DNA of 64,000 bases, from contig CM074821.1 of the NCBI GenBank assembly GCA_037447605.1, positions 620,001 through 684,000 of the forward strand. Reading direction: 5' to 3'. The translations under genes and the position numbers were made by a program. Within the stretch, counting starts at the first letter, position 1, and each line of letters begins with the position of its first letter. Shown here piece by piece: positions 25,828 through 55,552 of this stretch. Below the pieces are notes generated by a model. It saw nothing but the letters and a program-made list of their open reading frames with translations, searched no databases and was not told the DNA's origin. This DNA comes from Zygnema circumcarinatum SAG 698-1b. Lineage: Eukaryota > Plantae > Zygnematophyceae.

Positions 25828-28800
25828 TGACCTTGGAAGCGAACATGGAATTTTCACGAAGGAGGCCTCTTTTCATCATCGTTTCTGCCTTAAATTTGTT
25901 TCTGTTGGCACAAGAATCGGAGAGCCAGACTCATCCTAATGATGGTGGGCGGGATTCAACTTCTTTGCAATTAGGAGTGGTTTTCTTGCCTTCAGTATGT
26001 AGGGTTCGGTTAGAGGTTTTCAGCAATTTACATTGCCTCTGTTTTTATTGGATTTGTCTCTCTTCCTGCAGCGGCAGCGCTGAATGCTTTGTATGAGGCC
26101 CTTGGGAAGCCCGCGCAGCTTTCTTCTTGGGAAAAAGGAGATCCCTGTGTCTCCAAATGGCAGGGAATCAGATGCGGACGAAACAATCGGGTTACGTTTT
26201 TGTAAGTGTTCGGCAGCTTTAGTGTGGGCCTTGTTACATCATTCTGCTTCTAAAATCTACGCGTGCTGCCGAATGAATGGAAACGTACCAAGTATTTGCT
26301 TTCCAACAATTCAGTGAACCCCGAGTTAAGAGTGTTCAGATTCACTTACAATCTTTCAGCAGAACGTTTGTTTTTTCTGCGCACTTGCTCTGTAATAGAG
26401 GGGTTTGCTCTCAAACTATGGGAAGGACACTTTCTGTGTGTTTCTTGTTTAGGGTTTAACCCTTACATGTGTGAAGTGTAATTTGAACGAGATATGAGCG
26501 CTCTGGGTGTACCTATTGAAACACATTTTTTGGAGTAAGTACTTAAAGAGTATTTTACATGTTTTTAAAAAGAGATGCTGTGATTCTTTGGTTCCAGGCA
26601 ATTGAGCAACCTCGGATTGTCAGGAAAAATACCGCCGGAGGTTGGCAATATGCAAGCCCTGACGAATTTGTAGGTTTTGCAGTCCCTCCCAGTGTGTCGT
26701 GTTCTTTGGAATACGTGGAGCTACAACTCAGTATTTTCCTTGAGGCAAAATATGTGATTCTGTAGCCAGAGGGAAGGAAAACAGGCGCTTAATACGATAT
26801 GAAGTACGAGAGAGAGAGAGAGAGGGAGAGGGAGGGAGAGAGAGAGAGAGAGAGAGAGAGGAGAGAGAGAGAGAGAGAGAGAGAGAGAGAGAGAGAGAGA
26901 GAGAGAGAGAGAGAGAGGAGAGAGAGAGAGAGAGAGAGAGAGAGAGAGAGAGAGAGAGAGAGAGAGAGAGAGCAATAAGAGTGCGAATCCTTGTGCTGAT
27001 TTTACTGTGCGGTTGACGAATGCAGAGACCTGTCCTACAATCCAAACATTGGAGGACCCATACCTCCGGAAGTTGGGAAACTGACTAACTTGACCATCCT
27101 GTGAGTCTCTGCAGAACTTTAACTTAAAGAACGTCAGAACTGTCTGTTGCTGATTTCTTTTTTTACTCTTAATGATTGAGATTCTCCCTGTCATCCTTTC
27201 ACTTAAATAACGAAAGGATGACAGTAAGTTTTTCTCTCATTTGACAGAATTTTCCGTTCTCAGTTCTCAGTCAAACTGCCAACCTATGGAGGGTTCCAAT
27301 CTAAGAAGTAAGGCACGTTATTTATTTCTCCTTTTAATGTAGCTAACTTCAGATTTAAGGTTTTTTGAATCTGGGAGGCAGAAACTTGGTCTATTGCGGA
27401 TTGGCAGGGTCTATTCCTCCTCCTTTGGGCGATATCACTCAGCTCAAATTCCTTCAGCTTACAGGGAATCATCTTACAGGGAACATTCCTCCGGAATTGG
27501 GCAAATTAAAGAAGCTTTACTGGCTCGATATTTCGGAAAACAAAATCGGTGGGCCCATTCCTGTATCGCCGGGTCTCGATAGCTTGGCTTCAATTTCACA
27601 TTTTCACTTCAATAATAATTCCCTTTCTGGACCAATCCCTCGCCAATTAGCCATTCTGTCCAACATGTGGCACCTGTAAGTAACCTGTCAGACATGTTTC
27701 ATTAGCATTTGGGTTTGGCAGAAATCTTCTATTTTCACATAGCAATGCTCTTTACAACATAGAATTGAAATTGTATGAGAGGTGCTGTTTCAGTTCCGTG
27801 CTTCCTTCCCCCTCTTTTGTGGTCAAGCCCTTGGGAGGGTAAAAAAAAACAAACAAACAAACAAACAAACAAACAAACAAAAAAACAAAGAAATATATGC
27901 TGAGAATGAATAGAGTGCTTCATGCTGACATGTATGTATGCCACAATGTTGGAATGATAATATGTGATGAAATCTTGACTTGATCCATTTTTCATTTTGC
28001 AGTGTTTTGGATAACAACTCCCTCACTGGACCGTTACCCCCAGATTTGAGCAACCTCTCCGAATTGGCTGTTATGTAAGAATGTCAAAAAGAAAACTTAT
28101 TTTTTAAGAGTTTTCAAATTACTTTCGAGATTTCAGAGTCAGAAGTTAGTTTTTGCTGTTTGTTGTGCATCGCCATTATTCCTCACATAAATAGTAGGAG
28201 TGTTTCAGGAGCCTCTATCATTTGCGGAGTGAATAGAAAGACTGTGTTTCTATGTTGCAGTTATTCTGTAAACAGTGCAGAGGGAAGAATAGTGAGAGGG
28301 TTTTGTGAAATATTCTTGATATTGATTGACAAAAAAAAAAAAAAAGGGAGGGCCTGACAGGCGGCTGAGCTTCAACAAATTTTCCGGAAGCCTTCCTTCT
28401 GCATACGGAAATATGCCAACCCTTCAGGAACTGTAAGTTTTTAGTTTTGTTTTTTTTTTAACTGAACTGAACTGCTCTTGAACTGAATTTGAGTGAATCG
28501 AACCAAGCATTTCCTGAGACAGCAATTTTACTTTTTGGTGTGACTGCAACTTTGCACTCGTTCGCACTAATGGTTCTCGTTATCATCAAAAGTTGATTTG
28601 CATTTTACCCTTTGAAAAGCCAACCCTGCAGATCGCTCACAATACTAACATTAGGATGCCATAGTACACAATTTCAAACTTCAAATTTTTTTCTGCTTGC
28701 TTCTCAATGCAAGAGGCAATAGTCCTTGCGCTGTTTCTTAGTAGAATGAGCTGAAATTGTTTTCTGCTCTGCTGGGATATTTCTCAGCTCTGTAAGGGAC

Positions 28801-54900: not shown

Positions 54901-55552
54901 GGCCATGTTTTAAGCAAGTTTGATTCCTCCCTGATTGGTTGGAACAGGGGTATTTGGACCCTGACTACTACCACACGCAGCAGCTGACTGACAAGAGCGA
55001 CGTATACAGCTTCGGCATCGTCCTGCTTGAGCTCGTAACCGGCCTTCCGCCCATCTCCGAAGGCGACCACATCCTCACTCAGGCACTGCACACCGCCCCT
55101 ACACCCCTTTGAACCCAAAGCCTTCCCCCAAAAAAAGAAAGACCTTTTAAAAGAAACCCAACACAAAAAACTCATCAAACCCAAGACTATGTACCACTGT
55201 CTCAGCCGCTTTCCATCACCATGCATGGCCGCAGGTGAGAGAGCGCATTGCAAGGGGGGGGATCCGAGAAGTGGCGGATCCGTGCATGGGAGAGTATTCC
55301 CTTGACGGGGTTGCAGAGATCGTCCATCTCGCGCTGCGCTGTGCGGAGGAGAGAGCAGTGGAGAGGCCGAGCATGCGGGCGGTGCAGAAAGAGCTTGAGT
55401 TCGTGGCGGGGGGGGGCATGTACTGCACTCCCTCTGAGAGCGACGAGGAGGAGCTCTCCAATGTTGGGGTTGAAGCCCCGAGGAAGTCCATCGAAAAAAA
55501 GGATTTCGAGTATAGTGGAGAGATCGACTTTAGCGAGGTTCAGGCCCAATAG
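45987..55552 (+). CDS. LRR receptor-like kinase, LRR-VIII-1 (HPCA1/CARD1-like), paralog 2, intact RD kinase
   Basis: Signal peptide then YTHPDD, N-cap ([17 protein letters not shown]), 13 LRRs (46790-50628), ENLIC cap, CPGVTC...CTCALP, IDIFIFP...GPY juxtamembrane domain, [29 protein letters not shown], and kinase with [57 protein letters not shown] and [15 protein letters not shown]; stop at 55552. Confidence 0.95.
48860..50085 (+). repeat. ~1.2 kb almost pure G/A tract, (GGGGGA/GGGA)n, in LRR-RLK2 intron
   Basis: A single T seen (~49385); the tract lies between LRR exons ending ~48690 and starting ~50125. Confidence 0.95.
50650..51120 (+). repeat. Compound CT/CA low-complexity repeat in LRR-RLK2 intron
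   Basis: Recurring CTCTCTCACACACAGAC(ATCTC) units. Confidence 0.85.
52529..52965 (+). repeat. (CAGTT)n pentamer satellite in LRR-RLK2 kinase intron
   Basis: About 85 degenerate GTTCA units directly after the Gly-loop exon (donor at 52504). Confidence 0.95.
53880..54345 (+). repeat. C/T-rich degenerate ~21-bp minisatellite (CCCTCTCTCTCCCTCTGTCCT-like) in LRR-RLK2 intron
   Basis: Direct reading, upstream of the acceptor at ~54348. Confidence 0.8.

Follow-up and report, generated by a model that had tools for sequence, protein, structure and literature searches.

An old pair of HPCA1/CARD1-family receptor genes in Zygnema circumcarinatum, one of them encoding a predicted pseudokinase

In a stretch of 64,000 nucleotides from the zygnematophycean alga Zygnema circumcarinatum SAG 698-1b (GenBank assembly GCA_037447605.1, contig CM074821.1, positions 620,001 to 684,000 of the forward strand; hereafter the window), we found two receptor-like kinase (RLK) genes, P1 and P2, that probably form an old pair within the HPCA1/CARD1 family, namely, group VIII-1 of the leucine-rich repeat (LRR) RLKs. 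On this reading, P2 carries all catalytic motifs and P1 is an expressed, predicted pseudokinase receptor with a conserved ectodomain. HPCA1/CARD1 is the best-characterised cell-surface receptor for H2O2 and quinones in plants, and a copper-based mechanism was reported for it in 2026. The proteins encoded by both genes are predicted to share one layout, consisting of a signal peptide, an LRR N-cap, 13-14 LRRs with a surface His triad, a C-cap, a four-Cys loop, a SEA-like domain, one transmembrane helix, and an RLK/Pelle kinase. All positions given here refer to the window, and those of the main features are collected in Table 1.

To build the gene models, the plus-strand frames of both regions were compared, with the full-length relative P0003 as a guide and splice sites set by phase. 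The introns of both genes are GT-AG with the exception of one GC-AG intron in P1 and two in P2, and one of the GC-AG introns is shared in position. The two genes agree in their intron positions and phases except in two places: P1 has an extra intron between LRR12 and LRR13, where P2 has a single exon, and P2 has an extra intron in the kinase N-lobe (53110-53232 and 53345-53444 versus the single P1 exon 32966-33185). Each gene has thirteen LRR-coding units. A first-pass annotation of this region had described co-oriented genes about 11 kb apart with near-identical exon architecture and 13 LRRs, and both gene models agree with that description; the stop codon of P2 ends at 55552, which is also where the region it had marked ends. 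The assembly gap within P2 intron 3 hides no coding sequence, because the flanking P2 exons (46778-46849 and 47126-47200) encode consecutive LRRs that match P1 exons 26598-26669 and 27026-27100. Intron 9 of P2 (1433 nt) contains a ~1.3 kb GGN/CCN microsatellite (48830-50100) with Gly-rich and Pro-rich open frames on both strands.

Several lines of evidence place both genes in the HPCA1/CARD1 family. P1 and P2 align end to end and collinearly with proteins annotated by NCBI as HPCA1 or HPCA1-like (35-40% identity over ~900 amino acids; for P2 the collinear part exceeds 900 amino acids). Both have the signal peptide, the LRRNT_2 cap with its Cys pair, and the ~13-14 plant-type LRRs that define LRR-RLK group VIII-1, and Pfam matches at the exon level include LRRNT_2, LRR, and kinase domains. 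Single SEA-like exons gave no matches in the PDB by phmmer, and only a family profile succeeded. This profile, which covers the C-cap, the Cys loop, and the SEA-like region of twelve family members, matched three entries of the HPCA1 ectodomain and nothing else in the PDB (E 5e-21). It also matched exon 12 of P2 (98.8% probability, E 1e-16) and its counterpart within the P1 exon 30471-30906, here called exon 12 (96.7% probability, E 3e-10), and the second SEA-like exon of P1 had a weak match (E 0.011). A mixed alignment of exon fragments on a scaffold was discarded, as the SEA-like and terminal exons were misaligned.

For phylogenetic placement, a kinase tree that included a small sample of five outgroup RLKs grouped P1 and P2 with VIII-1 on a weak separating branch (Shimodaira-Hasegawa-like approximate likelihood ratio test, SH-aLRT, 69). 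Together with the end-to-end alignment, the shared motifs, and the SEA-like profile, this tree bears out the group VIII-1 membership proposed in the first-pass annotation. Within the kinase tree, P1, P2, the Closterium clade, and the land-plant a+b clade share an unresolved base. P1 and P2 were sisters (SH-aLRT 91) in a quick full-length tree, which had no outgroup and shows within-family relations only; in a careful tree search with 28 sequences, the support for this sister relationship fell to 58/14. Placement of P1 or P2 with subclade a was not rejected by approximately unbiased tests, and we therefore do not assign either gene as an ortholog of a or b. Between the two proteins, identity is 45% across the LRRs, falls to 24% for the SEA-like part, and reaches 50% across the kinase domain. 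Judged from these comparisons, P1 and P2 are old paralogs within VIII-1.

The kinase domains of the two genes differ in their predicted catalytic ability. P2 has a complete kinase of the arginine-aspartate (RD) type, with every catalytic motif present (GLGGYG, VAVK, NEIELL, HRDVK...N, DFG, KGTLGYLDPDY, and ERP), as had been claimed before. P1 keeps the VAIK Lys, DFG, and the catalytic-loop Asn. The earlier count of at least four catalytic lesions in P1 is also upheld, since it differs at six positions where 166-172 of the 172 other family members surveyed, all with a collinear ectodomain, carry the conserved residue. In these relatives, the HRD Asp is present in 171 (the remaining one has a gap), the first Gly of the Gly-rich loop in 171 and the second in all 172, and the αC Glu in 166; the Gly of the P+1 loop is invariant (172/172), and the adjacent Thr occurs in 166, with Ser in the other 6. 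P1 is the only sequence that departs from these relatives by losing the HRD Asp, both Gly-rich loop glycines, and the P+1 Gly. A pseudokinase is defined from sequence by the loss of the VAIK Lys, the HRD Asp, or the DFG Asp, and P1 has Asn in place of the HRD Asp. P1 thus falls in VIII-1 by descent and not by catalytic signature. The literature that we searched contained no description of a pseudokinase in LRR-VIII-1.

A domain-wise comparison, based on the alignment columns in which at least 80% of the relatives agree, indicates that these changes are confined to one part of the protein. In the LRRs, P1 keeps 53 and P2 57 of 60 such columns, and in the C-cap/SEA-like region the numbers are 13 and 14 of 16; as a percentage, the share of family-conserved columns retained by the P1 ectodomain was put at 88-100%, similar to P2. 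In the kinase, P1 keeps 77 of 101 columns (76%) and P2 keeps 94 (93%); 20 of these columns are kept by P2 only and 3 by P1 only (sign test p=0.0005). By this measure, constraint is relaxed in the P1 kinase alone, and most fold-defining residues remain there. Relaxation that is limited to the kinase, with the ectodomain kept, fits a retained non-catalytic receptor and not a decaying gene.

The ectodomain of HPCA1/CARD1 binds copper through a His triad. In the Arabidopsis structure, Trp166 and Asp168 of CARD1 lie beside the copper site and contact the triad (PMC13184263). The same study found that the four Cys form two structural disulfides that are dispensable for signalling and that only the His triad is essential, and it described the surface His triad as absent from other LRR-RLK groups (PMC13184263). 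By alignment, both P1 and P2 keep the residues that bind copper in Arabidopsis, as well as the equivalents of Trp166/Asp168 (Table 1). The first-pass annotation had reported the same HxH-x21-H triad and C-x4-C-x16-C-x-C cluster in both genes, and both motifs could be assigned coordinates; its view of the four Cys as sensory residues does not hold, given their structural role in PMC13184263. In a motif table of 42 family members, about 38 of the 40 others have the triad, and the triads of P1 and P2 align with that column. Both genes are expected to carry the triad and the Cys loop by homology, since these are family traits, and their presence adds no independent signal.

A Ser/Pro-rich linker, of 61 amino acids as assembled, is peculiar to P1; P2 has 17 amino acids in its place, and the linker was found in none of the 172 relatives examined. 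It is encoded by an imperfect in-frame CTCCCC array (30531-30687), and the insert probably arose from a microsatellite inside the exon. That the array is an intron was considered and rejected, as it has no GT donor inside and the RNA contigs start upstream of the next AG; the Ser/Pro tract is probably present in the P1 mRNA. The description of this insert as an added (Ser-Pro)n stalk was partly right: the insert is real and in frame, but it is not next to the membrane.

Transcript evidence was examined by aligning RNA contigs of four sequencing runs (X20, X8, X25, and X7) to positions 29201-35200. We found eleven joints in this region, all at canonical sites and eight supported by three or more runs, which match the exon boundaries of P1 between 29309|29592 and 34073|34247. 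The RNA contigs agree with the genome in every letter of this region, the HRN codons included, and therefore the lesions of P1 are not assembly errors. Unspliced forms of P1 are also among the RNA contigs, and run X20 has a low-depth alternative acceptor at 33623, 14 nt downstream of 33609, that would shift the P1 frame. For P2, between a quarter and two thirds of the sampled sequence words were found in runs X7, X8, and X20, which also contain words of P1, and both genes are regarded as expressed. A search for P1 transcripts with its SEA-like exon, within a 315-amino-acid stop-free stretch, as the query gave no match. With 923 open codons, spliced RNA, and an ectodomain conserved as in P2, P1 behaves as a transcribed gene and not as a decaying pseudogene.

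Several observations weigh against the reading of P1 as an expressed pseudokinase receptor that has kept its sensing ectodomain. Read support does not extend to P1 exons 1-8, the exon 11-12 junction, the Ser/Pro tract, or P2; the junction and the tract are uncovered because the RNA contigs break at repeats. Arg447, which contacts the triad in Arabidopsis, has no equivalent in either protein (Thr in P1, Ser in P2), and the behaviour of their copper sites may differ from that in Arabidopsis; this position is also non-basic in a liverwort and in Closterium. Some kinases with an Asp-to-Asn change in HRD keep weak activity, such that "dead" is a prediction for P1. No ortholog of P1 that might share its lesions was found, the search with its SEA-like exon having given no match. 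A HMMER search of 1.8 billion representatives with the P2 SEA-like exon gave 5 matches and no orthologs of P1 or P2, and the homologue lists obtained from P0003 and from the Closterium protein P0124 consist mainly of land-plant or Closterium entries, with the proteins of the window not among them. Finally, the last kinase exon of P1 (subdomains X-XI) was not found by tblastn on either strand of the whole window, and the P1 protein may be truncated or simply unread at this end.

This last point depends on an assembly gap that cuts off the P1 model just after the exon at 34247-34381 (hereafter exon 19). Pfam places exon 19 at positions 163-200 of the 263 positions of the Pkinase profile, so that about 60 profile positions (~201-263) are unread. 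The counterpart in P2 is a 152-nt intron followed by a 105-codon exon that encodes kinase subdomains X-XI and the tail. None of the AG acceptors to the right of the gap yields a kinase C-lobe when joined to exon 19, and none of the RNA contigs listed spans the gap. In runs X7, X8, and X25, the contigs with exon 19 exceed, as read from their record coordinates, the portion aligned to the window by ~190-210 nt. This extra length suggests that the last exon of P1 exists and is hidden in the gap. Immediately downstream, there is a spliced plus-strand transcript (34460-35200; junction 34764|34879, GT-AG) that has no kinase homology and is probably the 5' part of an O-FucT-like gene at 36.4 kb. It was rejected as the 3' end of P1, since no acceptor there gives a kinase C-lobe, and is assigned to another gene.

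Among the alternative explanations, the one that fares best is a dedicated P1-P2 heteromer of sensor and modulator for redox perception outside the cell, in which the dead kinase would be an allosteric or scaffolding partner. We regard this as unlikely. Shared ancestry and common ectodomain features are consistent with it, as are the sampled words of both genes in runs X7, X8, and X20, and the HRN and αC Glu changes of P1 resemble those of HER3, a likeness that may serve as a lead only. However, two unrelated genes lie between P1 and P2, and proximity in a eukaryote is no sign of partnership. A plant LRR receptor usually has a short co-receptor as its partner and not one of its own paralogs, and the CARD1 ectodomain was solved as a single chain.

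A second alternative is that P1 is transcribed and decaying, i.e., a 3'-truncated relic whose mRNA has no function. The absence of the last kinase exon from the window, the accelerated evolution of the kinase domain, and the low-depth frameshifting acceptor in X20 would all fit such a relic. This explanation is nonetheless very unlikely, as the 923 codons remain open across 19 introns with all splice sites canonical, despite ~55% protein divergence from P2. Furthermore, the P1 ectodomain keeps the family-conserved residues as P2 does, most residues that define the kinase fold are still present (76-81%), the missing exon coincides with an assembly gap, and the contigs of X7, X8, and X25 appear to run on past exon 19. 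Equally unlikely is the idea that P1 is an active atypical kinase and that the pair comprises two active receptors with different outputs: although VAIK, DFG, and the Asn of HRN-x4-N are kept, such that ATP binding and slow phosphotransfer are conceivable, and some kinases without the catalytic Asp keep low activity, six simultaneous changes at such conserved positions, including the catalytic base and the salt-bridge partner of the Lys (the αC Glu), speak against it.

The reading that we prefer, an old paralog pair with a predicted pseudokinase member, leads to the following picture. P2 is most likely an active RD receptor kinase, given its intact set of motifs. P1 has probably kept the ability to bind copper through its ectodomain and may bind nucleotide inside the cell, with no efficient phosphorylation expected. 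It would then signal or modulate non-catalytically, pairing with an active kinase as a scaffold, an allosteric partner, or a competitor. P2 would be an obvious candidate for such a partner.

Comparison with known systems clarifies what is shared and what is particular to these two genes. Arabidopsis HPCA1/CARD1 and CADL (ectodomain structures PDB 9VBD, 9VBV, and 21AZ) resemble P1 and P2 in domain order from the signal peptide to the kinase. HPCA1/CARD1 shares with them the Cys pairs of the LRR N-cap and C-cap, the His triad on adjacent LRRs, the W-x-D motif, the four-Cys loop, and the SEA-like domain, and with P2 the RD kinase. However, overall identity is only 35-40%, the Cys loop is C-x4-C-x16-C-x-C in P1 and P2 and C-x2-C-x9-C-x-C in Arabidopsis, and the Arg447 equivalent is lacking in the algal proteins; P1 differs further by its degenerate kinase and its 61-amino-acid Ser/Pro linker. 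Closer in lineage are the VIII-1-like proteins P0139, P0151, and P0153 of Closterium, another member of Zygnematophyceae (unnamed or hypothetical proteins at NCBI). These are collinear and have the His triad and the x4/x16 Cys loop, as in P1 and P2, and an RD kinase, as in P2, but they are only 31-36% identical to P1 and P2, form their own clade, and none has the lesions of P1.

Pseudokinase receptors are known from other families. BIR2, GHR1, and STRUBBELIG combine an LRR ectodomain with a kinase-like domain that lacks catalytic residues and act as scaffolds or regulators, as P1 might. Their LRR-RLK groups and their ectodomains are different, however, and none of them is known as the paralog of a copper-dependent redox receptor; GHR1 has been mentioned beside HPCA1 in stomatal reviews. 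In animals, HER3/ErbB3 offers a possible analogy, in that one paralog of an active receptor family has the catalytic Asp changed to Asn and the αC Glu lost, as in P1. HER3 works as a partner of active ErbB kinases (EGFR/HER2 in this comparison), all within an animal tyrosine kinase family; the likeness makes a partner role for P1 a reasonable hypothesis but is no evidence for it. In our estimate, there is only a slight chance that this streptophyte alga has a HER3/EGFR-like, copper-dependent redox receptor of the heteromeric kind, in which P1 would supply the non-catalytic half.

Table 1. Positions of the main features of P1 and P2 in the window.
Feature	Position	Strand	Remarks
P1 gene, 3' end open	25827-34381	+	20 assembled exons, 923 open codons
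P1 exons 1-7	25827-25944, 26072-26201, 26598-26669, 27026-27100, 27382-27675, 28003-28074, 28361-28432	+	
P1 exons 8-14	28788-28856, 29235-29309, 29592-29663, 29868-29939, 30125-30196, 30471-30906, 31334-31532	+	
P1 exons 15-20	31875-32042, 32401-32582, 32966-33185, 33609-33727, 33957-34073, 34247-34381	+	
P1 W-L-D	27521-27529	+	equivalent of CARD1 Trp166/Asp168; alignment with VIII-1a proteins
P1 His triad HxH-x21-H	27599-27607 (H205, H207); 27671-27673 (H229)	+	alignment
P1 Ser/Pro-rich linker, 61 amino acids	30526-30708	+	between LRR C-cap Cys pair and four-Cys loop
P1 four-Cys loop C-x4-C-x16-C-x-C	30709-30783	+	
P1 transmembrane helix	31913-31990	+	hydrophobic stretch of 26 amino acids, then RRRMQRRRR
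P1 degenerate Gly-rich loop AVSGRGK	32562-32582; last Val codon 32966-32968	+	first two Gly lost
P1 αC Glu to Thr	33056-33058	+	
P1 HRN replacing HRD	33713-33721	+	
P1 DFG	34002-34010	+	kept
P1 QLNL replacing KGTL (family KGT[LPMV])	34062-34073	+	end of activation segment/P+1 loop
Assembly gap	34416-34425		34 nt after donor (34382) of exon 34247-34381 ("exon 19"); (CT)n on left, GAGGGG repeats on right
P2 gene, complete	45987-55552	+	21 exons, 986 amino acids; built by homology to P1 and family proteins
P2 exons 1-7	45987-46104, 46374-46527, 46778-46849, 47126-47200, 47396-47689, 47855-47926, 48210-48281	+	
P2 exons 8-14	48388-48456, 48617-48691, 50125-50196, 50477-50629, 51147-51453, 51611-51803, 51964-52131	+	
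P2 exons 15-21	52358-52503, 53110-53232, 53345-53444, 54349-54467, 54679-54804, 54948-55082, 55235-55552	+	
Assembly gap	46901-46910		within P2 intron 3
P2 W-F-D	47535-47543	+	
P2 His triad	47613-47621 (H213, H215); 47685-47687 (H237)	+	
P2 four-Cys loop C-x4-C-x16-C-x-C	51256-51330	+	
P2 HRD catalytic loop	54453-54461	+	
P2 other kinase motifs	G-loop from 52483; Lys 53152-53154; αC Glu 53200-53202; DFG 54724-54732; ERP (subdomain XI Arg) 55361-55369	+	

The window is eukaryotic in character, with ~50% G+C, abundant CT/GA and GGN microsatellites, and six 10-N gaps, of which those at 36885 and 41397 are intergenic. P1 and P2 are 11.6 kb apart, separated by an O-FucT-like gene on the plus strand and a DnaJ+RRM gene on the minus strand. 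They are not an adjacent tandem, and the structure of the locus gives no reason for calling the pair a system. The O-FucT-like open reading frame (36402-38117) has a Pfam O-FucT match below the curated cut-off and adjoins a ~1 kb GGN/GA microsatellite and the 10-N gap at 36885. The minus-strand open reading frame at 42805-43404 encodes the end of a DnaJ domain and an RRM and is DNAJC17-like. A C-lobe query also found further kinase genes upstream, at ~7570-7750 (+), ~10180-10420 (-), and ~23370-23940 (+); two of them have the pattern 'AGKWP...RPDL' and one is Pti1/RLCK-like. A scan of the window against Rfam gave no matches.

The importance of P1 is limited, as pseudokinases occur commonly within plant receptor families and its function is only predicted. 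Still, as a natural paralog with copper-site residues and lost catalysis, it provides a tool for asking whether sensing can be uncoupled from kinase output, and it could show whether members of this family act on each other. Because its lesions occur in none of the 172 relatives, P1 may be a lineage-specific experiment of nature. The pair also bears on the age of the family. CARD1 has been discussed as having emerged in early land plants (PMC13184263). From the sequences compared here, the HPCA1-type architecture including the triad predates land plants, as Closterium P0139, P0151, P0153, P0197, and others keep the triad, the Cys loop, and an RD kinase. If the HER3/EGFR-like arrangement considered above were true, HPCA1-type apoplastic sensing of H2O2 or quinones with a division of labour between dead and active members would likewise predate land plants, contrary to PMC13184263. 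The age of this family thus bears on when the perception of apoplastic reactive oxygen species arose.

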